Shown one piece after another: positions 3,661-62,338 of a stretch of DNA of 64,000 bases. The translations under genes and the position numbers were made by a program. The DNA is taken from assembly GCA_028023455.1 (NCBI GenBank), contig JAQFVV010000007.1, positions 18,166,001 through 18,230,000 on the forward strand. Direction: 5' to 3'. The notes beneath the pieces are model-generated. The model did not search any database, was not told the origin of the DNA, and saw only the letters and a list, made by a program, of their open reading frames with translations. How positions within the stretch are numbered: position 1 is the first letter of the stretch; each line of letters starts with the position of its first letter. This stretch comes from Epiperipatus broadwayi (Eukaryota; Animalia; Onychophora).

Positions 3661-5232
3661 TAGATGGATGGTATGTTATTTGACTTATTTGAAGTATGAT
3701 TGTTTGATCTCTGGTATCAAGGTAGGCCAGACTCAATCTCACCAACTATAATGTTTTTTCAATTTTTACCAACTCAGATGGCTGACAATTGGGAAAGTTG
3801 ATGTTAAACTGAGAATAAATCATACATATTCTGCTGAATGATTTTTATCCACCAGTCTAAAATGATAATAGTTTAGATTCTGAACCCCATAAATAATTAT
3901 TTATGTATTTATTAAGGTTTGCTATTGGTATATTATTTTTACTTGTCCATGGTGCATAGAATACTAATAGACCTTTAAGGATAGAGTTAACTATTTTTAG
4001 TTTTGTTCTTAGATGGCATTTAATAGGACTGAAAGATAATAATTTACTTGAGAACTTATCAGTGGGTGACATAGAGACACACACTGAAATACCTAAAAAT
4101 GTAGCTGGAACTGCTATAAACTTTGATGAGATTTTTCTTACTGTCAGTATCTGCCATGCTAAAGGTTTGTCCTCTGATATTATTGATCCAGTTGTTTAAG
4201 AAAATTTTTTTAGATACTCCATAACAAGAATGTTACTTCTATGGTAATTATTACTACATCATCAATATAAGCTAATGTATTTATATTTTTTCCAAGGTTG
4301 GAGACAAATATTCTGGAAATATTAATATTAATCTATCTCAAAAGAGATACAATGTACATAGCAAATAAAGTGGAGAGGGGGGATGGGGTGATCCTTGTGC
4401 AAGGCCTTTTGGAATATGAAATATTAGAACTGTATGCAATTATTTGCATCTGGTTTTTTATTTCTTATATAAGGCCATAAGTTAGTGTTGGGTTTTCTAG
4501 TATGATCTTATATATCTTTTTAGAAAGAAAAAAATGTAAATATATATAGTCAAAGGCATCTTTGAAATCAATTTTTATTGCAATCACATTAGATAGACTG
4601 TTTTGTTTTACATATAATACTATTTCATGATATGCCAATGTTTCTTGATGAATGTGTCTTCCAGATAGATATAAAGAAGTGTTTATTGTAATGTAATAAT
4701 CCTAGAAAAGAATCAGTAGATTTTTTCCCCAGCAGTTATGAATTCATTGAAAAAAGTGTCTAAAATTTTAATGAAATTAGATTTTAGAAAAATTAATTTA
4801 ATGTTTCATGCATTTTAATGAGCCATTTAATGCTAAATAGAATGATTTTAAATAGATTGGACATATTTCTATGTGAAAAGTTTATTGAATTTAGAAAACA
4901 AAAAAATAAAACCCTAGGAGATACAATTTGAATGGTTAAAAACTATTATTGATATACTGTATAAAGATATAAAGGAGAAAATATTTATAAAGTTAAATCT
5001 ATAAACAATTGCTGGTTGGTCACATCTCTCAAAAGCCAGTTTATTCTTAGATAATCTTCTATTCAAGTTTATTAATTTTATTCATTATGTTTATATCAGT
5101 TTTAATAATTCAAGTACTTATTGTTAGTATAGGGGATTTGAACTTAGACTTTCAAGTACCCATCAACTATCCACACTATCTCATATCACTGATACACATG
5201 ACTACACACACATGTGGAAAGGATAAATAATC

Positions 5233-5276
5233 ACCAATATAAATATTTTGTGCTAAACCAGCACTCATCAGTTGGT
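5233..5276 (-). ncRNA. Degenerate type-I hammerhead ribozyme (family B)
   Basis: accaa CTGATGA GTGCT ggttt AGCAC aAAA TATTTATA ttggt: core and stem II intact, G12 changed to A, stem III mutated. Confidence 0.7.
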
Positions 5277-5306
5277 CCAGATTATTATCTCTTGCACATG
5301 TATATA

Positions 5307-5349
5307 ATCAACTGATGAGTCCTGGTTTAGACAAAATATGTATATTGGT
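5307..5349 (+). ncRNA. Degenerate type-I hammerhead ribozyme (family B)
   Basis: tcaa CTGATGA GTCCT ggttt AGAC aAAA TATGTATA ttggt: G12 changed to A, stem II damaged. Confidence 0.65.
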
Positions 5350-5569
5350 GATTATTTATCTTTTCTACATGTGTGTTGTCATGTGTATCAATGATATGAG
5401 ATAGTGTGGATAGTTGACAGGTACTTGAAAGTTTGAATTCAGATCCCCTATATTTACAATTAGGCTCTAGGTATCTGAAGAGTGCCTGTATTTCAAATAT
5501 TTAAGCACTTATTATAATTAAATTCTTTTTATTCATTATATCAAATCTTTATTTTGTTCTTTTTGTTGA

Positions 5570-8249: not shown

Positions 8250-8330
8250 AAATTCCTCACTGATGAGAGCCATAAGTGAGAAACTAATCTGGGGATATAG
8301 ATGGAACAGCAGTGGATAGGGATTATCTAA
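8250..8330 (+). mobile_element. Family-A hammerhead element fragment (degenerate HHR 8254-8295)
   Basis: tcctca CTGATGA gagccataagtga GAAAC taatc tgggga...gatagggat aligns to 23348-23420; stem II and III broken. Confidence 0.75.
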
Positions 8331-10400: not shown

Positions 10401-10864
10401 ATATCATTATGCATTTCCACTTGAGTTTTGGTCATATTCTACGTTATTTTTAAGGTTTATCCCTTTTTTCCTTCCAAATTATTTTACTTCAAACTTGTCT
10501 ACTTGGAGAAAAGAAATAAATATTGAAAATAGCCATAGAATATAATCGAAATGTAGATGGGTATGTATAATGATATTTAAAAAGTGCAAATATATATAAA
10601 AGAAAAAAGGAATGGTGCTATGTTATGCAATTAGACATTCAGAATGATGTATAATGTTTTAAGAACAAATTAGAGGGGGTGGAAAGATTTTTAGATGATA
10701 TAAAAATAGAATGAGCCTATCAGATGATCACAGAATTATGAGTTAAATCAGAAAGTAGAAAGAGAATAAACGTATATATATATAAGATTATTAAAAAAAT
10801 GGATAATCATCTACATATAAACTCTCTGGAGTTATAACATATTTGTTCTTTAAACCTTTAATAT

Positions 10865-11090
10865 ATCTCATGATCCCCATTTTTTATGCTTATACAAGCT
10901 GTTAAAACAGTAGCAACTCTCTCCATGCAGTAATGTCACCCAATGTAAGCCATAACAATCAATGGATGCTAGAAGGCTTGTTCATCAAAATTCCTATCTA
11001 ATGCTTACTTATCTAATAGTCCCAGATTAGTTTCTAATGTTTAACCTTCATCAATGAAGAGCTTTTTATCTGAGATCATTGTACCCAATT
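10865..11090 (-). mobile_element. Family-A hammerhead element copy (degenerate HHR about 11020-11060)
   Basis: Aligns to the reverse complement of 23320-23544; core TTGATGA...GAAAC TAATC tggga; homology ends about 160 nt downstream of the cleavage position. Confidence 0.75.
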
Positions 11091-18345: not shown

Positions 18346-20395
18346 ATCATCATCATCATCATCATTATCAACCATTATCAATCCACTGCAGGATGAAGGT
18401 CTCTCCAAGTTTAATCCATCTCCGATCTTCAGCTTCTCTTCTCCACATCACCCCTGCACACTTTCTTATTTCATCCATCCATCTCACATGTGGTCTCTTT
18501 CTGGGTCTTTTACAATCTCTTGGAATCCAGTTTAAAATTTCAATTGTCCATCTATTATCATCTCTTCTAGCAATATGTCCAGCCCAACTCCACTTCAATC
18601 TTTTAATTTTTTCAATGAGGTCAGTAACACCCGTTTGTTCTCTTACCCATACATTGCGTTTTCAATCTCTTCTTGTTACTCCCAACATACATCTCTCCAT
18701 ACTTCTTTGAGTGGTCTAAAGTCTCTGTATTGCTCTTCTATTAAGTGTCCAAGTCTCAGATCCATAAGTAAGAACTGGTAAAACACATTTATTAAAAACC
18801 TTCCTTTTCAAACACATAGGCATATTTCCTTTTAGTATCAAGTTATTTCTACCAAAAGCACTCCAACCAAGTTTAATTCTATGATTAAATTCTTCCATTA
18901 TGTTTCCATCTGTATTAATAATCTGACCAAGGTATTTGTAACTGTTAACTTCTTCTAATTCATCATAATCAATCTTTATTTTCATATTTTGAGCAAATCG
19001 ATTAAATATTACTTTAATCTTTTTAACATTTATCTTTAGTCCTACTTTCCTACTTTCATCTGATAATTCCTGCAACATATCCTACAGCTGCAAAAACAAC
19101 TACATCATCTGCAAAATCTAAATGACTTAAATAATCTCCATTTACTTTCACTCCTTTAGTTTCCCATTTTAATCCACAAAATACTTCTTGCAGCACTGCT
19201 GTAAAAAGTTTTGGAGATATGGAGTCACTTTGTCTTACACCTTTCTCAATGTTGACTTTCCCAGTATCATTATGTAATCTAATTGTTGCTGTTGCATTTT
19301 TATAAATATTCTTCAAAATATGACAATATCCTGGATCTATACCTTGATGATCCAATGCTTTAATCACTGAAGAAATGTTTATAGAATCAAATGCCTTTTC
19401 ATAATCTACAAATCCAAAACATAATGACAACTCATATTCATTTGACCTTTCTATAACTTCTCTCAACACCTGGATATGATCTACTGTACTAAAACCACTT
19501 TTAAATCCAGCTTGTTCTCTTGGTTGGTGGAAATCCAATGTTCTCTGTAGACGAGTTGTAATTATCTTGGTAAAATTTTTATATAAAACTGATAAAAGGC
19601 TAATAGGTCTGTAATTTCTAATATCTTCTTTATCACCTTTTTTAAATATTAATATTATTACTGCATTCTTCCAATCATTCAGTACATCTTTATCATTTAG
19701 ACATTTGGTATATAACTTTGCTAAAAATTTTTCTATTTCTTCTCCTGCTTCTTTTAATATATCAATTATAATTCCATCATTACCTGGAGCCTTTCCCTTC
19801 TTCATACATTTAATTGCATGTCTCACTTCTTCATTTAAAATTCTGGGCAATTCGGAAGATGGAATAGATATAGGAGGTACTTGTTCTTTATTACTATATA
19901 ATTCTTGATAAAAATCTTCTACCAATTTCATGATGTCATCTCTCTTTTTAGTAACAATTCCATCTTTTTTTCTTATTGCAGATATAAATTTCCTACCAAT
20001 ACCAAAATGTTGTTTTACATTCTTAAGACTTTTATTTTCTTCTACAGCTTTCCTTGCTAGTTCACAATTATACTTTCTTATATCATTTTCAACTCTTTTC
20101 CACACCATTTTACAAAATTCGAGATATTCAATTTTTTTTAATGCATCATTTTTGTATATCTTCATATTCTTTCTTTTCTTCATAAATTCTCTAGTCTCAG
20201 TAGAAATTTTATTGGTCAATTGCTGCTTTTTTCTACCAGCTATCTTTGTTGCAGTTTTTAAAAGGGTATCAATTATTTTCATATTAATTTCATTCAAATC
20301 TGAATTATGCTCAAAATCTACTAATACTTGAAACCGATTTCTAAGTTCTAATTTAAATTCATTAGAATGTTTCTGAAGATTAGGAATATCAACTG
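18346..20395 (-). mobile_element. RTE-clade LINE, 5'-truncated, frameshifted
   Basis: RT ORF 19056-20297 (KAPGNDG, YRPISLLS, QAGF, FVDYEKAFDS, KGVRQ.D, LDFADD), continued by 18716-19078 and 18368-18598; (GAT)n 3' tail. Confidence 0.95.
19056..20297 (-). pseudogene. RTE reverse transcriptase ORF fragment (413 aa)
   Basis: Non-LTR RT motifs in the ORF track; frameshift right after FADD. Confidence 0.9.
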
Positions 20396-20737
20396 TAAAT
20401 ATTGTTTTAATTTACACAAACATTCATTCTGCCTTATCAGGCACTGAGAAGAAAGACCATGGTGTTTCTTGATCTTAAACTCAGAGGTAAAAAGCCAATA
20501 AACTCACCACACTGGCTAATGCGTGTTGGTGAGTAGCCCATCCATGTTCATATACTATATGAATAATCACATAGTAATAACAGCTGCAACGACAAGAACG
20601 TATGGAGTGGACATTAGGAATTTGCCCTGCTCGGTTCCTTTAAGACCTCCAAGAGGAATCAAAGGGTCTCCTTTCAGTTAATAGCAAACTCCTTTCTGCA
20701 ACATGATTATTGTAACTTTTAACTCATTTTCACTGAG

Positions 20738-20848
20738 GCAAAACTCTCCATACACTAGCGCCACTCAATGCAAGCCAGAATAATCAATGGATACAAGAAG
20801 GTTTGTGCATAAAATCCTTATCTAGTGCCTACTCATCCAATATCCCCA
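20738..20848 (-). mobile_element. Family-A fragment covering the region 3' of the cleavage site
   Basis: ggcaaaactctcc...ataatcaatggat...cataaaatcc...tcatccaatatcccca aligns to 22710-22821. Confidence 0.75.
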
Positions 20849-21089
20849 CACTACATTTAATCATAAATAATAACACTTGAATCCTTTAGAGAGTTCTGCT
20901 AACCTCTATTTTTTAAAGAGTACAAGACTGGTTTTCCATTTTTTTTAAGACATTATAATCTGTATTTATCTTCACAATCACTTATTAAACCTGATTTGGC
21001 ATATATCTAGGTGGTTCTCAGGTATAAATCATATGATATCAGTCCAAATTATATGTATTAAATCTTTGATGTGTTGTTAAGGCAAATGC

Positions 21090-21914: not shown

Positions 21915-22628
21915 ATGATATAATATCTAACCGAATAAATAATTAGTTGATTATTAATGCACTATTTTGAAGTAAATGGTATCAGAAGTGTGACTACAAA
22001 AAGTTTGACAATTGTAGTTCAACTTATAGTAAAGTACAATGGTTTATAGCAACTAGGAATGATATAATAATCTGTAGCCTAATAAATGATTAGTAATAAG
22101 CATTAGTGTGTTTATCTAAAATGGATGAAGTCAAAGTTGTGAGTGCAGGAAGTTTAATACTTGTAGATCAACATTTAAGATAATAGTTTAAAGTTTATAC
22201 CAACTAGGAATAATATAATCTCTAGCCTAATAAATGATTAGTAATAATCAGTAATGTATTTATCTAAAGTGGATGGCATCAAAGTTGTGAATGCTAAAAG
22301 TTTTACACTTGTAGGTCAAACTTTAATAAAGACAATAATGTTTATATGGAATCAGGAATGATATGATAACCTCTAACCTAATAAATGATTGGTAATAATC
22401 ATTAATGTATTTATATGAAGATGATGGTATCAAAGTTCTGAGTGCATAAACTTTGACACTTGTAGGTCAAACTGTAATAAACAAAATAGTTAAAGTTTAT
22501 ATCTGGACTAGGAATGATATGATAATCTCTGATCTAATAAATGATTAGTAATAAGCATTAATGTATTTATCTAAAATGGATAGTATCAAAGTTATGATTG
22601 CCAGAAGTTTGGCACTTGTAAATCAAAT
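21915..22628. repeat. Diverged tandem array, about 150-bp unit x about 5
   Basis: Anchor taaat(g/a)att(a/g)gt recurs at 21936, 22083, 22231, 22382 and 22538 (periods 147-156). Confidence 0.85.
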
Positions 22629-22815
22629 TAGAATTTATTTATATGCATTGAGCACATTTTTAAAGTTAATGTCAGTTAAGTATGCTCTATATGATTTGGT
22701 GTAAACAAAGGCAAAACTCTCCATACAGTAGTTTTACCCTGTGCCAAACAGAGTAATCAATGGATGCCAGAAGGCTTGTGCATAAAATCCCTATCTAGTG
22801 TCTACTCATCCAATA

Positions 22816-22857
22816 TCCCCAGACTAGTTTCTGGCTTGTGGCCATCATCAGTGAGGA
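22816..22857 (-). ncRNA. Intact minimal type-I hammerhead ribozyme (family A)
   Basis: tcctca CTGATGA TGGC cacaa GCCA GAA ACTAGT C tgggga; predicted cleavage between 22822 and 22821. Confidence 0.88.
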
Positions 22858-23347
22858 GCCTTGGATCTGAGAGCACTGCACCTAAATCTTAGGATCTAAT
22901 GCAACCCTCCAGCAGCCATCTTTTAACTCTACTTTACTACAAAACTATGAGAATGAAATTGAAAACATTGTTAATATCTTCAATCTAAGCTCAATAGCTG
23001 TTTGGCACAGGGTGGCACTACTGTATGGAGAGTTTTGCCTTTGTTTACAACAATTATGTGCTAGTATAGAAATGGTGATCATGTGATGTTTAGTGGTTTA
23101 ACACCAATCCTGTCTAATAGGATAGTGGTGGCTATGGTTGTTTATGAGCCAAAGACACCAAAATGTATGGGTGCTGAATTGAGTTCAGATCCATATGACT
23201 ATATAAGCTATTGAGCTTAGATTGAAGATATTAACAATGTTTTCAATTTCATTCTCATAGTTTTGTAGTAAAGTAGAGTTAAAAGGTAGCTGCTGGAGGG
23301 TTGCATTAGATCCTAAGATCTAGGTGCAGTGCTCTCAGATCCAAGGC

Positions 23348-23389
23348 TCCTCACTGATGATGGCCACAAGCCAGAAACTAGTCTGGGGA
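23348..23389 (+). ncRNA. Intact minimal type-I hammerhead ribozyme (family A)
   Basis: Stem I tcctca/tgggga (6 bp, one G-U), core CTGATGA, stem II TGGC/GCCA, GAAA, palindromic stem III ACTAGT, GUC cleavage after 23383. Confidence 0.9.
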
Positions 23390-23541
23390 TATTGGATGAG
23401 TAGGAACTAGATAGGGATTTTATGCACAAGCCTTCTGGCATCCATTGATTACTCTGTTTGGCACAGGGTGGCACTACTGTATAGAGAGTTTTGCCTTTGT
23501 TTACAACAATTATGTGCTAGTATAGAAATGGTGATCATGTG

Positions 23542-23610
23542 ATGATTTGGTGTAATGGTCTAGGGTCAGTCTATGGATCTCAAGGTTTATGGATTATGAT
23601 CTAACTCTTT
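23542..23610 (+). mobile_element. tRNA-derived SINE head that served as target of the family-A insertion
   Basis: atgatttggtgtaatggtctagggtcagtctatgga resembles atgatttgatgcagtggtaaagagtcagactctgga (minus strand, about 31990-32040). Confidence 0.5.
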
Positions 23611-23940: not shown

Positions 23941-24150
23941 GCCAGCTGATAGCACTTAATAAATCCCTATTTAGTGTTATATTCTAGGCTAATTATTAGT
24001 TTATGGTTTTCATTAGTGAGGATCTGCTGGTAGTAAAGTGCATTACATCCACTGAAAAAAAACATAAGCTAGAAAATAGTTTGGGGATAATGAATAGGAT
24101 AGATACTGGATAGGGAATTATTACACACTATCAATGGATATCTATTAGTT
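23941..24150. mobile_element. Old head-to-head pair of family-A remnants
   Basis: 23941-24023 aligns to the minus arm (aaatccctat.tagtg...tcattagtgagga); 24050-24120 aligns to the plus arm (cactga..cataagctagaaaatagtttggggata...gataggga). Confidence 0.55.
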
Positions 24151-37074: not shown

Positions 37075-37170
37075 GTCAGAAGGTTTGTGAACTGGGTGGC
37101 ACTACTGTATGAAGAGAGTTGCTACTATTTGAAAAGCTTGTGCAAAGATAAGAAATGGTGAACATTTGGT
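37075..37170 (+). mobile_element. Family-A fragment (3' region and tail)
   Basis: gggtggcactactgtatgaagagagttgc...agaaatggtga aligns to 23466-23535. Confidence 0.65.
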
Positions 37171-38375
37171 ATTTTAATGTTTAAAATATTATTAGCTGGG
37201 AATGAAATCATAAATAATAACCTTCTTTTCTTACAATTGATAAATTACAACAAAATGTTTTGGAAAAACTAAATTTATCAAATACTATCTAAGGAAGATA
37301 TATTGTATCTCTAAAACTAAAAGCTAAACTTATAGTGTTTTTAGAAACAGTACTTTTACATATCCAAGAATAAATTTTATTTCAAAGCACCAAATTGTAA
37401 ATAAAAATGCATAGGACTGTGTAATAAGTTCTTCAGGAACTCTTATTTAGCAGTAGACATTTTTATTCTCCTGTCACCTGTTGAAAGATTTGGTAACTAG
37501 TAAATGCCAGATGGTAGGGCTTAATAAATCTATCCTGTATTGTTTTGTCCATTATTCCCGAACTAGTTTCAAGCTTATTATCATTTAACATCAATTAGTC
37601 ACTAAAATTAACAGTAGATGGCATAAAAGTGATGAAAGAAAAATGTAAACTGGGTAAGTTGAAATCATGTGAAGTCAGATATATGTCTCTTACATCCACA
37701 TTTTGCCATTATGCTAAATTATAGTGGTCATATATTGCTATTTAGTTATTTGTTAGTTAAGAAAAGATTTGTAAATATATATGATTTTAATACCTGTGTG
37801 ATGCACATTTTTGGCAGCCCCTAGTATCCATTTGGATTAAGTTTTCAATTTTTTATTTTACTAAATAAATCTTTATTTTGCATTATATTTTCATAATTTT
37901 TAATTTATTGTTTTACAGTTATAAGTTTTAAAATAAAAAAAAAATTCTTAAAAATAATATTTCAACATTGCAAATATAGAAAATAAATAAATTGACGTAG
38001 TAATCAAAATTTCACAATTGCTGATAAAAATATATTTGGAACAAAATAAAATTTATTTGAACTTCATTTTTGAAAGTGACATGAATTTTTATAAAAAAAA
38101 ATGTGTGAAGCAAGAAGATTATATTTTAAAATTTTAAATTCCACTTATAATTATTTCAAAAATATCAAAAAAATAATAGCTCTATTGTTGATAGATGAAT
38201 TCCTTTTTTCATCATTCCCAATTTCCTGCTTTATGCTACTATATTTCTTTTGACTTGTCTTTTTCTAAAACAAGGACATAGTTTTAAATAATATTTTAGT
38301 TTAAACATTGTATTTTTATCAAAAAAGTTAAATTTTTCACAAATATTTTGCAAAAATAATCATAAATATTTAAAC

Positions 38376-40052
38376 AAGAATGTAAAACAATATTTTGGCA
38401 TTGGTAGGAAATTTATATCTGCAATAAGAAAAAAAAGATGGAATTATTACTAAAAAGAGAGAGGACATCATGAAATGGATAGAAGACTTTTATCAAAAAT
38501 TATATAGTAATAAAGAACAAGTACCTCCTATATCTATTACATCTTCCAAATTGCCCAGAATTTTAAATAAAGAAGTGAGATGTGCAATTAAATATATGAA
38601 GAAAGGAAAGGCTCCAGGTAATGATAGAATTGCAATTGATATATTAAAAGAAGCAGGTGAAGAAATAGAAATTTTTTTTAGCAAAGTTATATACCAAATG
38701 TCTAAATGATAAAGATGTACCAGATGATTGGAAAAATGCAGTATTAATATTAATATTTAAAAAAGGTGATAAAGCAGATATGAGAAATTACAGACCTATC
38801 AGCTTGTTATCAGTTTTTTACAAAAATTTTATCATGATAATTACAACTCATCTACAGAGAACATTGGATTTCCACCAACCAAGTGAACAAGCTGGATTTA
38901 AAAGTGGTTTTAGTACAGGATCATATCCAGGTATTAAGAGAAGTTATAGAAAGAACAAATGAATATATGTTTCCATTATGTTTAGGATTTGTAGATTATG
39001 AAAAGGCATTTGATTCTATAAACATTTCTTCAGTGATTAAAGCATTAGATCATCAAGGTATAGATCCAGGATATTGTCATATTTTCAAGAATATTTATAG
39101 AAATGCAACAGCAACAATTAAATTACATAATGATACTGGGAAAGTCAACATTGAGAAGAGTGTAAGACAAGGTGACTTCATATCTCCAAAACTTTTTACA
39201 GCAGTGCTGCCAGAAGTATTTTGTGGATTAAAATGGGAAGCTAAAGGAGTGAAAGTAAATGGAAATTATTTAAGTCATTTAGATTTTGCAGACAATGTAG
39301 TTGTTTTTGCAAATAATGCTTTAGAGCTGCTGGAAATGTTGCAGGAGTTATCAGATGAAAGTAGGACTAAAGATAAATATTAAAAAGACTAAAGTAATGT
39401 TTAATTGATTTTCTCAAAATATGAAAATAATGATTGATTATGATGAGTTAGAAGAAGCTAACCATTACAAATACCTTGGTCAGATTATTAATACAGATGG
39501 AAACATAATGGATGAAATTAATCGTAGAATTAAACTTGGTTGGAGTGCTTTTGGTAGAAATAATTTGATACTAAAGGGAAATATGCCTATGTGTTTGAAA
39601 AGGAAGGTTTTTAATAAATGTGTTTTACCAGTTCTTACTTATGGATCTGAGACTTGGATACTTAATAGAAGAGCAATACAGAGACTTCAGATCACTCAAA
39701 GAAGTACGGAGAGATGCATGTTGGGAGTAACAAAAAAAGATCGAAAACACAATGTATGGGTAAGAGAACAAACAGGTGTTACTGACATTGAAAAAATTAA
39801 AAGATTGAAGTGAAGTTGGGCTGGACATATTGTTAGAAGAGATGATAATAGATGGACCATTGGAAATCTTAAACTGGATTCCAAGATATTGTAAAAGACC
39901 CAGAAAGAGACCACATGTTAGATGGATGGATGAAATAAGAAAGTGTGCAAGAGTGATGTGGAGAAGAGAAGCTAAATATCGGAAAAGATAGATTGAATTT
40001 GGGAAAGACCTTCATCCTGCAGTGGATTGATAATGGTTGATGATGATGATGA
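38376..40052 (+). mobile_element. RTE-clade LINE, 5'-truncated, multiple frameshifts
   Basis: RT fragments in ORFs 38470-38709, 38780-38962, 38883-39383 and 39421-39813; (GAT)n tail; same family as 18346-20395. Confidence 0.95.
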
Positions 40053-41287: not shown

Positions 41288-43536
41288 GTAAATATGTTGC
41301 CATATTCTTAAGCCTTTGTATTTAAAATGATTTGTTTTAATACAATGTTAGTATTTCTGTTTAAACTAACAACACTATCTTTTTTAATGTCCGCTCTAAA
41401 TTCGCAGGCCATGATTTTTGTGCAGTACATTGTTACTGAAAATCAGGTCCACCTATGTGTAAAAATATTTCTTAACTTCTGTATTTCTCATTATAAAAGG
41501 TAAAAGTAAATCATTATTTATTTCAGTTGGTAAGCTTATGGGAAATGAATTATATTCCAATTCTTTATCAAAACACCAGCAGTCATTATTATCTAGAAAT
41601 TCTAATCTCCAATTAAGGGGCTAATTATTTATACCTAATACTTTGAATTTAATACAAACTGCTTTTAACGTCATTAATACATTTGCCTTTTATTATTATT
41701 TTCCATTCTACAAGCAACACTTCACAAATATAGATCTACTATTTACCCTCTTTCATAGAAATGAAAAAACATTACAGCACTTTCTTATGGATTGTTCCTC
41801 ACTTCTTCCTTGTCATATTTTTATCACTAACATGATTAATCAACAACCTCATAAAAATATACAAATTGGCTCTTTTCCTAATATAAGGATGACTATATTC
41901 ATTCTTTTCATAATCTGGCTTGTAAGATGCTATCTAAGCTTTAATCCCACATCTCACAATACTAAATCACTCTTTCTAAAAAAATTAATTAACATTAGGA
42001 CCAGAGACCATACCCATACACCAGCTGACACTTTTGCAGCTACATGGAATATGATTTCATTAACAACAACCCACGACTTGGCTATTAAAAATTCTAATTA
42101 ATATTTAATAGATACATATTGATTATTGCTTAATTATATGAACATCTATCTTATTGCTTTTCTACTTAAAATCTCTTTTGTTTCAATAAGACTTGTAAAT
42201 AATCTCCAATGTATATAGTAAACCTAATAAAGTTAATTTAAAACTAATGTAGTTGTTAAGAGTTGATTTTTTAGAGTAATATGATTGCTTTTACGTTACT
42301 AATATGCTGCAATGAATCGATTTTCTCCCAAGCAATAAGAGCAATTCATCCTCCAGAATATCCTGTAAATCAATATTTTTATAAAAAATAAGCAATATAA
42401 ATTAGGATGACAATAGAATTGTCACCATTAATGGTATATAGAATTACATATAATAATATATATTTCATATTTACAAAAATAAGAAACAAACGTTATCCTT
42501 AGTAGTATTTCTGATTAAACCACTAAACATAACATGAGTGGCAATATTGTATGGAGACTTTTGCCTGTTTTAGTATTTCTGATGATTGGAGATAGCAGTC
42601 TAGTGTCTCAGATGCTATTGCATTAAGGAACTGGTATCAGAGTAAATATTATCTGTGGAAATCTTTTTATCCCTTGTTCTGATTGTCTCTAATTTAATCC
42701 AGAAAGTATTTTGGTGTTTCATAGAATCGTTATTATATTTAAAAAATGCATCTGGTGTGTCAAAGTCTATATAGAATAAATGTTGAAACCCTAATTTCAG
42801 GGAATACTCCTTTTGAAAAATGATTTAATTAAGGTCTGTACATTGCAATTAGCAGTTTGGAATAGACTTGGATTGCTAAACCTATGTTTTCAAAAGATTG
42901 ACATTCAAAACATAAGTGAAATTGAAGCTTTGGGTCTACATGGCAGAGCTCATTTTGAGAATCAATATTTGCACAGTATCTTTTATATTTATAAAAACGT
43001 AATGTTGGTAATGATTGTAAATTTAATTTTATTAAAAAATCCAAAATATTTTGGTTCAAGAGATCAGTGCTTGAAGTTGCATATCAACTGCTTATTATTA
43101 ATATTTAGCATAGTCTACTCAATATTATTGTAAGTATACAGATATAATAAGATGTAGTCATTGGAATAATAGTATTTGTCTTCAGGCAGAGAAAAATTTA
43201 AGTTTAAATTGTTAACTATGAGCAAAGGAGAGATTTTAAGTAATCAATCATAGATGATGGCTTGTCTATTGGTGTAATCTTGAATATGATTTCCAAATTT
43301 GGAACAAAAATGTGCATTAAGGTATTAAATTTATAGTTTTCAAAATCTGGAAGATATATATTGAGTGAAGATCTAAACTATTTAGAAGTCATGATAATTG
43401 TTTAATCAAGATAGAAGTTTTTTTTTCCTCAGAGCAATTTCCTGCTAATGATACTGTAAATTGAAAAGAGCTTTTGTATATATAATTATTGATGAATTGT
43501 AAGGTATTTTTGTCATTAGTAGTAAATTAAATAACG

Positions 43537-48981: not shown

Positions 48982-49973
48982 CTAGTTTCTCCCTCTATCT
49001 GCCAGTTTGTATGGTTTTAATTGCCTTGCATTAAAGGTCCATTTTATTTCCTTGGTTCCCTTTAGCAAGAAAGCATTGTCCCCACATTCCCTTTCAATGC
49101 GGTATGGCCCTTGATATAAAGGGAAGAATTTTTTGAAGTCTTTTTTTTCGTAGGGTTGCTGGGTTTGGGGTTCCGTAACCATACATCATCTTCTTCCCAA
49201 AATTTGTAGTGTGAGGGGAGTCCTCTCCATACTCGTATTTCAGCCATATTCGTTAAACGTCGTCGAGCATCCTCTTGATCCTGACTCGGATTTATATGTA
49301 TAACATCCTGTGGTAGGGGTATTTTGAAGACCCTTGGACATGGTCTACCATAGTGTAACCATTCTGGGGTAAAGCCAGTTGATTCATTTATGGTATAGTT
49401 GATATAACTGACTATTTCTTTAGTTTTATCTACCCATCCTCGATGGTTGGTCGCAAGGTGGGTGCGAAACAGTCTATTGATTTCCCGCATGACTCATTCA
49501 CATGGGTTTGATTGCGGGTTTCTTATAGATGTGAGTCGGTAGATCCAATCTTTCCATGCTTTTGATGTGAATGCGGACCCATGGTCCGATAGGATGGTAG
49601 TAGGTTTGCCTACCTCCCTGAATTGGATGTTTTCGAGAAGACGTATTGCCCCCCTATAATCATTTGCTTTTACTGGGTATTCCCGTACATATTTTGAAAA
49701 GATATCATATGTCACCAAGAGATATTGACATCCCCAAAATTTTGGTAAGGGTCCATAATGATTAATGGCCAGTAGTTTGTTAGGAACGGTAGCGAGAACC
49801 GGTTTGCGAGCGCCGGCAAATGATTTATTTGGGAACTTGCATTGAGCACAGGTGGTACAAGTTCTCAACATGCAGAGCACCTGTGCATACATCCCGGGCC
49901 AATAAAATTGACATCTCAATACTTCTTCGGTCTTTCTCGGCCCGTAGTGTCCAGACGTTTCATGGGCATACAT
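48982..49973 (-). pseudogene. pol: Integrase (three frames): HHCC zinc finger, core, GPY/F
   Basis: HETSGHYG..CTTC; AINHYGPL (first catalytic D appears as N); SDHGSAF; YQGPY; broken by frameshifts. Confidence 0.9.
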
Positions 49974-50078
49974 TATCAGTTGGTTTCTTAGTCACTTAGG
50001 CACCATGATTTTCCATGGGCTTTCCCTGTTCTTGGTTTTTATCTGCAGGATCCCATCCCTAATTTGATATGGTGATAT

Positions 50079-51775
50079 TCATTTATCACATGGTTTGGTG
50101 CTCTTATCGCGTTGGTTTGTTTTCAACTTGCTAATGATTGCTCCGTACTGTGAATCTAAATCTTGATAGTATCGGAGGTTTTTGAGATCTGAATTGATGC
50201 TGGTTGCCTTGTTCATGGTCATAATCTTTACAGCCTGATTATCAATCACTGGGTTTTGTGGCTCAATTGCTATGGGGTGTCGACTTAATGCATCTGCAAC
50301 CACGTTTTCTGGGCCCGGGCAATAGATCACTTTGTACTGGAATTTCTGCAGAAAGAGACTCCATCTTATTAACCGGTCATTCATTAGAAAACTTTTGCTC
50401 AGGAATTCGAGGCAGCGGTGATCTGTAATAATGATGACCTCGGACCCCAGAAGAAACTGCTTAAATTTTTGGCACACCCAGAAGATCATGAGAGTCTCTT
50501 GTTCAGTGGTAGTATAATTAACTTCTGCACCCCTCAAGGTCTGACTGCTGAAGTACAGAACTTGATGCTCACCAGCGGTTCCAATTTGGGATAATACTGC
50601 TCCTAAACCGCTTTTGCTGCTATCAGTCTGGACATAGAATGGACGGTTAAAATTGGGATAGTGAAGCATTATGGCTTGGAAGAATTTGTGTTTGATTTTA
50701 TTAATTTCCTGTTGGTGTTTATCTGTCCATTCCCATTTTCTATTTTTACGCAGCAGGTCAGTCAAGTGGTGGGTTTCCTGGGCAAAGGCGGGGTAGAAAC
50801 GGTGGTAGAAGTTGCAAAGGCCAAGAAAAGATCTGACTTGTTTCTGCGTAGTGGGCGTAGGAAATTTCTCAATGGCCTCTACTTTCTCAGGGTGTACTGT
50901 GATCCCTTGCTGGCTGATAATGTGGCCTAGGAAGGAGATTTCGGTTACCGTGAACTGGCTTTTTTCGAAATTAATTGTAATGTTTTCCCTAAGGCACTCT
51001 TGGAAAAACATGGCCAAATACTTCATATGTTCATCAAAAGTTTTGGATGTGATCACAATATCATCCACATAACAAACCATGTGCCATTGTACTTTTTCTG
51101 AAAGTACCTGTTTCAAGCATTGCATTAGCCCAGCCCCACTGTTAATCAATCCAAATGAGACTCCTTTGAAGACGTGTGTTTGTCCCTGGTATCGAAATGC
51201 TGTATACTTTCGATCCCATGGGTCTAAGGCCATTTGCCAGTAGCTTGCAGTAAGATCTAATGTAGAAAAATAAGTGTTTCCTGCCAGCTGCACAAACACA
51301 TCCTGGATTGGAGATGGCACATCCCGCTCAGGGATTGTCATATGATTCAAGTGGGGGCATCGAGGCACAGGCGTAGACTTCCGTTCTTCTTCTTTACGAC
51401 AACCAACGGGTTGTTGTATGGAGATGGGCATCACTCAATAATATCCCACTGCAACATTTGACGGATCTGGTTTTCCACTTCTTCCCTATATTGAAAAGGG
51501 ATCGGGTATGTTTTTGACTGCTTGTACGATTCTTCCCGGACTTTGATTCTGTGGGTGTATCTGCGGATTTGTCCAGGAGTGTTGGAAAACACTTGCATGT
51601 AGTCTTCCAGGATTTTCTTTGTGTGGATTTTCTCTGTTGCACTGGTTAATCCAGCCTCATGGATCTTAGTAGCTATGGTCTTGGGATCTACTGGTTGAAT
51701 AAAGCAGTTGCTGGTACCAATCATGGGCATTCTCACAGTTTCGAATTTAACTTGCTCATCTTGGAATTGGCACAT
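50079..51775 (-). pseudogene. pol: Reverse transcriptase + RNase H
   Basis: FSTLDLTASYWQ, FGLINS, YVDD, FLGHIIS, VRSFLGL, QTDSS, TDHRCL, NVVADALSR; the N-terminal part is in ORF 51431-51775. Confidence 0.95.
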
Positions 51776-62046: not shown

Positions 62047-62338
62047 AAACAGTAGCAAACTCTCCATGCGTAGTGTCATCTAGTGCAAACCATAGTAATC
62101 AACGGATGCAAAAATCTTTATGCGTAAATCCCTATCAGATTCCTCACTGATGAAAACCACAAACTAGAAACTAGTCTTGGGATATTGGACAAGTAAGCAC
62201 TAGATAGGGATTTTTGCAACACAACTTTTTACATCCATTGATCACCAAAGTTTGCATTGAGTGCACTAATGTATAGTGAGTTTGCTATTCTTTTAACAGA
62301 TTAGTAAGCATAGAAAATGTTGTTTGGGTGATGTTTTA
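62047..62338 (+). mobile_element. Family-A fold-back insertion with 12-bp TSD, nested in an older family-A remnant
   Basis: TSD gatatcagtttt (62035-62046, 62339-62350); inverted arm 62047-62136; long arm 62137-62338 with HHR tcctca CTGATGA aaaccacaaacta GAAACTAGTC ttggga (62141-62182; stem II broken). Confidence 0.85.

Follow-up and report, generated by a model that had tools for sequence, protein, structure and literature searches.

Metazoan non-LTR retrozymes, defined by Cervera & de la Pena in 2020 (PMC7229834), produce RNAs that have been described as highly self-paired. Animal retrozymes have further been argued to be non-autonomous derivatives of Penelope-like elements (PLEs), related to the pseudo-LTRs (pLTRs) of these elements (10.64898/2026.07.22.740005). 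The type-I hammerhead ribozyme (HHR) typical of metazoans has helices I, II and III of 6, 4 and 1 to 2 bp, the last with a small palindromic loop, and it is active as a dimer (PMC4209133). PLE insertions, for their part, are heavily 5'-truncated partial tandems (pLTRs) that adjoin an inverted 5'-truncated copy, often with a tail at one end only (PMC8557442). The purified PLE protein cuts and extends both target strands and favors AT-rich DNA, and RT starts at two adjacent internal sites of the RNA whose spacing equals the tail, a two-site initiation demonstrated in vitro for a single lizard element (PMC11167929). In the same study, the PLE used unprocessed multimeric RNA and hammerhead mutants inserted normally, so that HHR cleavage is dispensable (PMC11167929).

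The window examined here, a 64-kb stretch of the Epiperipatus broadwayi genome, contains an insert that is very probably a dead-end copy of a 456-nt non-coding metazoan non-LTR retrozyme, integrated by a PLE enzyme. It clearly exemplifies a known element class and does not represent a new kind. Repeat analysis of the window placed the insert between two copies of a target-site duplication (TSD) that are identical at 14/14 positions (Table 1). The longest ORF within it has 53 aa, and consequently the single ORF that marks an autonomous PLE, encoding a telomerase-like RT and a GIY-YIG endonuclease, is absent. Its GC content is about 40%, against about 27% in the flanks, and its target is AT-rich. 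The net arm lengths are about 295 nt (inverted) and about 544 nt (forward), the latter representing 1.19 units of the 456-nt repeat. An earlier, sequence-only reading of this DNA had described an ORF-less 837-bp insert within a 14-bp TSD, made of arms of 300 and 547 nt, with direct repeats of period 456 in the forward arm. The duplication, the lack of a long ORF, the period and both arms proved to be real, but the sum of the two arm lengths is reached only if TGTAA, ATG and a 2-nt central overlap are counted twice.

Table 1. Features of the insert and its surroundings, in positions of the 64-kb window
Feature	Positions	Strand	Remarks
Left TSD copy, 14 bp (ATGATTTGGTGTAA)	22691-22704	.	last 5 nt (TGTAA) match the element too (junction microhomology)
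Insert	22705-23541		837 bp
Inverted 5'-truncated arm	22705-22999	-	unit positions 209 to 456 to 47
Outer (left) end of inverted arm		-	'short' RT start site, ~47-52, at GTTTA 46-50
Hammerhead motif, inverted arm	22810-22860	-	core 22822-22851; helix I 6 bp beyond each side
Forward arm, 1.19 units	22998-23541	+	unit positions 1 to 456 to 88
Outer (right) end of forward arm		+	'long' start site, ~88-91; a little short of the family's usual 96/103-104
Type-I hammerhead motif, forward arm	23345-23395	+	C17 at 23383
Partial second unit	23454-23541	+	pseudo-LTR-like direct repeat of 22998-23085; covers the greater part of the one-sided 'tail' (~53 nt, unit positions 51-~104)
Right TSD copy, 14 bp	23542-23555	.	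first 3 nt (ATG) match the element too
Inverted repeat (two arms)	22696-22999 / 23206-23509		304 nt, 97% complementary
Direct repeat	22998-23091 / 23454-23547		94 nt, 98%, period 456

The hammerhead motif of the forward arm has an open helix I of 6 bp (UCCUCA/UGGGGA, including one G-U), with the 5' and 3' ends falling in this helix as for type I. Helix II (UGGC/GCCA) has 4 bp and a 5-nt loop, CACAA. The palindromic ACUAGU makes up helix III, with 2 bp and a 2-nt loop as a monomer and 6 bp (ACUAGU/ACUAGU) as a dimer. Furthermore, the invariant type-I core is complete, comprising CUGAUGA (23354-23360), GAA (23374-23376), the pair A23377/U23382 (15.1-16.1) and C23383, and the core of the minus-strand arm is identical to it. 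As read from the nucleotides, this architecture agrees with the description of metazoan type-I HHRs (PMC4209133). The hammerhead models of Rfam 15 gave no match at E<=1 over 3.3 kb, nor at E<=10 on a 141-nt slice; RF00163 matches do exist elsewhere in this genome. Since these models were silent, we used a hand-written structural descriptor (CUGANGA, helix II of >=3 bp, GAAA, a 15.2-16.2 pair, UH and helix I of >=4 bp) with a simulated null. It matched twice in the window, at 23354-23383 (+) and 22822-22851 (-), both times with 6 bp in helix I and 4 bp in helix II, when 0.01 matches per 64-kb window are expected by chance in first-order Markov simulations. The earlier claim of a complete type-I HHR in each arm, with the C at 23383, is upheld by these matches. 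A literature search found no paper on the core sequence.

It is important to consider that the locus has one hammerhead on each strand, in opposite polarity. Consequently, neither transcript is open to two cuts, nor can either form a tandem double hammerhead by itself. With this arrangement, the window locus is unable to release a 456-nt monomer or circle itself; longer arrays elsewhere could do so. The notion of a circle-making locus with two intact HHRs and a 456-nt monomer, under which the sequence-only reading had been headed, is contradicted by the presence of a single HHR per transcript. The opposite polarity of the two HHRs was implied by the description given in that reading and hidden by its title.

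The insert is not an isolated case. A query with the 456-nt unit returned 1,357 first-look candidates in the 5.6-Gb assembly, and the copies that were scored are 94 to 98% identical. Exact-pattern searches gave 8,407 matches for the core variant of the window, which has U at 10.1, and 51,367 for the variant with A at 10.1; the reversed-pattern control gave 0 in each case. The insert thereby belongs to a family numbering at least 8,400 copies, within a superfamily whose intact cores in the genome total about 60,000. At the free positions of the core pattern, variation is common at N7 (U/C), 10.1 (A/U) and loop 2 (CACAA/CAUAA), all of them places where hammerheads tolerate changes. Of 87 sampled units spanning the motif, 53 still pass a strict hammerhead descriptor; in the majority variant, helix II has an A-A mismatch at its base.

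This mismatch is one of several observations that would suit a different history, in which recent amplification has carried the hammerhead-like motif along as a non-working relic, with the element itself spreading as a linear, PLE-dependent, SINE-like RNA. The lack of Rfam matches points the same way, and the copies are young, so conservation among them is weak proof. Additionally, nearly all arms cross the cleavage site uninterrupted, and PLE-type HHRs cleave poorly in vitro, their cleavage being dispensable for insertion (PMC4209133, PMC11167929). Nevertheless, we consider a relic unlikely, although it deserves to be weighed seriously. All the invariant core nucleotides and the three helices are present, in an architecture like that of metazoan type-I HHRs (PMC4209133). 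Among the free pattern positions, the common variants are confined to the tolerated N7, 10.1 and loop 2. The sense strand is the only one with a strong predicted fold, and in the contigs of four public runs, filed under three organisms, the roughly 170 nt around the hammerhead (23283-23456) are 10 to 50 times deeper than the rest. Contigs of these four runs also have loose ends at 23040-23047 and 23101, after which AT-rich unrelated sequence follows. Together, the uneven depth and the loose ends indicate that related families and species share the ribozyme module and the insertion ends. The public runs that contain the sequence all consist of contigs of unspecified library type, none of them registered as RNA, and circles are invisible in such material; the joints found in the four runs are heterogeneous only, with no preferred molecule ends.

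The sense monomer, folded as a circle and opened at the cleavage site, has a predicted energy of -147.9 kcal/mol with 70% of its nucleotides paired, which corresponds to z = -5.5 against dinucleotide shuffles; the predicted fold of the antisense strand reaches only -88 kcal/mol. A predicted fold of this strength would fit the self-paired RNAs described for retrozymes, and it is not evidence of circles.

For the family, 27 independent loci were parsed, with 26 complete insertions among them; these loci are the best full-length matches to the window copy and therefore represent one subfamily only. In all complete insertions (26/26), the minus arm comes first and the plus arm second, their 3' ends facing outward, that is, head-to-head. 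Arm length ranges from 57 to 1,462 nt, or about 0.1 to more than 3 units. The tandem 456-nt arrays whose existence the sequence-only reading had proposed to check were found, as pure tandems of the unit without an ORF, with at least 4.3 units at L019 and 3 units each at L025 and L022. The two arms meet at differing unit coordinates, with overlaps of 1 to 12 nt (33 nt once) or fillers of 1 to 14 nt. Snap-back (hairpin) second-strand synthesis was considered for the inverted arm and rejected on account of these differing coordinates; the varied central junctions fit two independent cDNAs. A TSD is recognizable in 23 insertions, AT-rich and mostly of 12 to 15 bp (range, 12 to 19 bp). Microhomology at the junctions averages 2.2 nt, compared with about 0.45 nt expected by chance. 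Thus, the TSD, the junction microhomology (TGTAA and ATG in the window) and the inversion resembling twin priming, all described earlier for this locus, are real and family-wide.

The outer ends of these insertions fall at non-random positions. Each of the 26 has one end at about unit positions 43-56 and the other at about 89-111, and insertions with two short or two long ends are not found among them (0/26; P of about 1.5e-8 under independent end choice). Which arm is longer is independent of the end type (13/26). End positions concentrate at 50, 95-96 and 103-104, coinciding with the 3' borders of the GTTTA motifs at 46-50, 91-95 and 99-103; in the predicted RNA fold, the main start sites, GTTTA 46-50 and 99-103, lie in the loops of small hairpins. 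The window copy fits this pattern, with a short end at 47-52 and a long end at 88-91. The hammerhead cleavage site is at unit position 386, and the outer ends lie about 120 and 170 nt downstream of it. Outer ends that are away from the cleavage site indicate that hammerhead-cleaved linear monomers were not primed at their 3' ends. Furthermore, tandem units run on through the end positions 50 and 95-96/103-104, and consequently the template reached beyond the start sites.

The same anatomy speaks to whether the insert could be a DNA transposon of the fold-back or MITE-like type, bounded by long terminal inverted repeats, its hammerhead-like motif being incidental. The 304-nt inverted arms and the flanking direct duplication would be expected of such an element. 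On the right side, however, the inverted repeat is not terminal, as the insert continues for 32 more nt. Among copies, the inner arm ends differ, with arms of 57 to 1,462 nt, and the outer ends shift by a few nt and show microhomology. The arms contain tandem units and the TSD length varies between 12 and 19 bp. Variable ends, tandems and variable TSDs are explained by reverse transcription and not by cut-and-paste, which makes a fold-back transposon highly improbable.

Differences between units of the same insertion inform on the template. We counted 1,380 private differences and 57 shared with other insertions. At the subfamily-diagnostic columns, mismatch is 9% between opposite arms and 10% between units of the same arm, whereas it is 36% between insertions. 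These shared diagnostic alleles indicate that both arms, and all the units of an arm, derive from one template variant, the later differences representing decay. Two different templates, as a source of the 3 to 4% divergence between arms, were rejected because the differences are mostly private and the arms share subfamily alleles. Regarding age, 5/456 positions in the full plus unit of the window copy, and 3/248 in the main part of its minus arm, depart from the family majority. Its divergence of about 1.1 to 1.2% lies below the family mean of 2.3%, which suggests an insertion that is relatively young and not brand new. The earlier description of the element as young stands in this relative sense only.

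PLEs are plentiful in this genome. A profile search returned more than 10,000 first-look GIY-YIG (PF01541) candidates, and intact PLE ORFs of 800 to 901 aa are present, with head-to-head and tandem copies. The motifs RYVDD and GVYII...YIGNT were seen by eye in these ORFs, and the GIY-YIG model matches; a Pfam scan of the same ORFs gave no match, probably owing to composition filtering. We read 28 PLE/GIY-YIG loci (20 short, 8 long) among the more than 10,000 candidates. In none of the 28 was the 456-nt unit found inside a PLE by BLAST or by fuzzy and relaxed hammerhead scans, which recovered it only as neighboring insertions. The best-preserved PLE (L051) has no recognizable hammerhead, and an Rfam scan of five PLE loci gave no hammerhead match. 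Unrelated motifs similar to minimal HHRs occur at the PLE loci L046, L050 and L057.

These searches bear on whether the insert is instead a truncated copy, a solo pseudo-LTR with an inverted fragment, of an ORF-bearing autonomous PLE. Such an origin would be in keeping with the abundance of PLEs in this genome, with the heavy 5' truncation of PLE insertions and the hammerheads in their pLTRs (PMC8557442, PMC4209133), and with the position of frog retrozymes as sisters of PLE pLTRs (10.64898/2026.07.22.740005). On the contrary, the three loci named above each have several complete 456-nt units in direct tandem, free of intervening ORFs, nothing resembling the unit turned up within the PLEs of the 28 loci, and the 8,407 intact cores, with 94 to 98% identity where scored, make the unit itself look like the amplifying entity. 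We therefore give a truncated autonomous PLE only a small chance of being correct. The absence of the unit as a pLTR in the 28 loci, together with the pure tandem runs, leaves the independent, non-autonomous element as the reading that stands, in agreement with the earlier proposal that this is a retrotransposed, ORF-less hammerhead repeat of the retrozyme or non-autonomous PLE kind, which the anatomy and the family also fit. A derivation of the unit itself from the pLTR of a PLE is likely.

The window copy and all 26 complete family insertions carry the PLE signature of a partial tandem next to an inverted 5'-truncated copy, with a one-sided tail. For a retrozyme integrated by a PLE enzyme, we infer the following course of events. 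The GIY-YIG endonuclease of a PLE would cleave the two strands of an AT-rich target at points about 13 to 14 bp apart, and each target 3' end would then prime RT on the retrozyme RNA, aided by a few nucleotides of microhomology. Priming would be internal and not at the RNA 3' end, from start sites at the 3' edge of GUUUA, near positions 50 and 96-104. Two antisense cDNAs would extend unequally toward the 5' side of the RNA, over 295 and 544 nt in this case, and the 544-nt cDNA would pass a unit boundary and an uncut hammerhead site. Joined head-to-head through microhomology, the two cDNAs would leave the inverted arm, the partial tandem, the one-sided tail of about 53 nt and the 14-bp TSD. The sense-strand hammerhead presumably processes multimeric transcripts of longer tandems, acting as a double hammerhead through the palindromic helix III.

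The sequence-only reading had concluded that the template was either a re-ligated circle or an uncleaved multimer. The read-through of the cleavage site that motivated this conclusion is real, but the choice between the two cannot be narrowed: PLEs start internally on unprocessed multimers (PMC11167929), a biochemistry from which a cDNA running past an intact cleavage site and over more than one unit is expected. A circular template is possible in the sense that it is compatible with internal initiation, yet it is not required by the data. Since internal initiation does not need an RNA 3' end, a circle could serve as template. The presence of one short and one long site in each insertion, with the same alleles in both arms, would fit a dimeric RNP that holds a single RNA. 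We tentatively propose, as a rather speculative extension, that a PLE dimer RNP would engage a single RNA at two neighboring GUUUA hairpin-loop sites, one for each target strand, and that this RNA could be the 456-nt circle, copied by rolling-circle RT. If this were true, rolling-circle RT of a hammerhead-made circle would give arms longer than one unit.

These results emphasize that the locus alone is ordinary, being one among thousands of copies of a known class, and that the value lies in the family, which supplies clean natural data on PLE integration, a process still poorly understood. The ends of the family locate the RT start sites to within a few nt, at GUUUA motifs. The strict pairing of short and long ends (26/26) gives in vivo support to the two-site internal initiation known in vitro, and the shared-template signal limits the models of priming on two target strands. 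In addition, the anatomy offers annotators a recipe by which 'fold-back' repeats of this kind can be recognized as retroelements and not as MITEs.

Outside the PLEs, two comparisons are instructive. L1 twin priming is a minority outcome, with no fixed position for the second priming event and with segments copied from adjoining stretches of a single RNA. The family shares with it cDNAs primed by both target strands, a microhomology join and an inverted 5' segment within a single TSD; in contrast, the inversion is the rule here, priming occurs at two fixed sites and part of the sequence is present in both arms. The hammerhead repeats of newt satellite 2 and Schistosoma Sm-alpha (RF00163) likewise place an animal type-I hammerhead in a short repeat, with an expected double hammerhead, whereas the present element is missed by RF00163 and is dispersed, TSD-flanked and not satellite-like.

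The resemblance to PLE insertions is closer (Penelope/Poseidon and Neptune; Craig et al. 2021, PMC8557442; Frangieh et al. 2024, PMC11167929). In common are the pLTR-like partial tandems with an inverted 5'-truncated neighbor, the tail at one end, the AT-rich targets, a pair of neighboring internal RT start sites, a hammerhead about 120 to 170 nt upstream of these sites and the crossing of an uncleaved hammerhead by RT. The family differs in lacking an RT/GIY-YIG ORF, in its tail of about 53 nt compared with the 30 to 40 nt quoted for PLEs, and in the strictness of its short/long pairing, the tail being 'often' one-sided in the literature. Moreover, the start sites of the PLE studied in vitro are not homologous to the cut DNA, unlike the mean microhomology of 2.2 nt seen here.

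With the metazoan non-LTR retrozymes (PMC7229834; Li, Clavereau & Pollet 2026, 10.64898/2026.07.22.740005), the family shares a low-GC, non-coding repeat measuring a few hundred nt (456 nt and about 40% GC here), a type-I hammerhead whose palindromic helix III is weak, an organization from dimers to multimers, TSDs of more than 4 bp, co-occurrence with PLEs and a highly self-paired predicted monomer RNA. The monomer is at or above the top of the reported range of 150 to 450 nt, and the insertions are mostly short, dispersed and head-to-head, with 0.1 to 4 units per arm instead of long tandem arrays; the unit is tandem in the family, while the window locus has only 1.19 units on one strand. Taken together, every structural feature found agrees with the published picture of PLEs and retrozymes.

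The end structure of the main element, the 837-bp retrozyme insert with two head-to-head arms, recurs in the window in a mini-insertion of the same superfamily, bounded by a 13-bp TSD (TAGTATTTCTGAT). Its minus arm keeps only about 20 nt (unit ~85-104, counted along the 456-nt repeat) and terminates at the long site, the outer-end reverse-transcription start at ~96-104, and its plus arm keeps about 35 nt (unit ~13-47) and terminates at the short site, at ~50. The pairing of a short and a long end is kept despite extreme 5' truncation in both arms. Six older fragments of related hammerhead-bearing repeats, with identities of 73-92%, cover no more than the ribozyme module, the initial ~104 nt of the unit, or both, and one of them contains a decayed hammerhead core, CTGATGAAAACCACAAACTAGAAACTAGTC. 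By analogy, another head-to-head insertion of the Penelope-like element (PLE) type may also be present.

If the locus of the main element is transcribed, an RNA spanning both arms (window 22705-23509) would fold into a near-perfect hairpin of ~300 bp, from which double-stranded RNA or small RNAs might arise. The same holds for virtually all insertions of the family.

Other features of the window include retrotransposon remains in three regions, comprising fragments of RVT_1 as well as a Ty3/gypsy-like pol (RT, RNase H, integrase) that is divided between two ORFs. The direct repeat in the left flank of the main insertion (77% identity, period 156) is unrelated to the hammerhead element.

Features in the window and in its genome assembly (G000; C, contig; L, PLE locus)
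Feature	Location	Size
Mini-insertion	window 42516-42570 (TSD-bounded span 42503-42583)	55 bp
Older related fragments	window 8254-8324, 10850-11085, 20736-20853, 24063-24127, 37083-37174, 62094-62245	
Decayed hammerhead core	window 62147-62176 (inside 62094-62245)	
Candidate head-to-head PLE-type insertion	window 5123-5498	
Retrotransposon remains	window 19056-20297 (-), 38883-39383 (+), 49494-51434 (-)	
Left-flank direct repeat	window 22400-22478, 22556-22634	79 nt
Tandem full-length PLEs (L051)	C12394:20940001-20950000	unit 3,135 bp
Closely spaced RF00163 matches	C6248:344391-344507; C335:661131-661223; C72:371243-371378; C6236:5016887-5017018; C12557:2718428-2718535	41 nt each
Min-hammerhead-like motifs	L057:6585-6610 (-) = L050:3080-3105 (-); L046:2784-2809 (-)	

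Across the 5.6-Gb assembly, helix II of the majority core variant (A10.1; 51,367 copies) has an A-A mismatch at its base, at position 10.1. With a U in that position, the subfamily found in the window (U10.1; 8,407 copies) regains a helix II of 4 bp. Matches to the Rfam model RF00163 (Hammerhead_1) at five loci repeat on the same strand at a spacing of only 52-96 nt and appear to form a separate family of very short tandem hammerhead repeats in the same genome. Five matches to this model elsewhere in the assembly scored above the gathering score. The ORFs of the tandemly arrayed full-length PLEs were matched by a GIY-YIG model in the genome search, although Pfam hmmscan gave no match for them. 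PLE ORFs also adjoin the min-hammerhead-like motifs, in which a bulged A precedes a helix II of 5-6 bp (CTGATGA-A-GATTG...CAGTC-GAAAC). These motifs are unrelated in sequence to the ribozyme of the window and probably belong to other PLE families.
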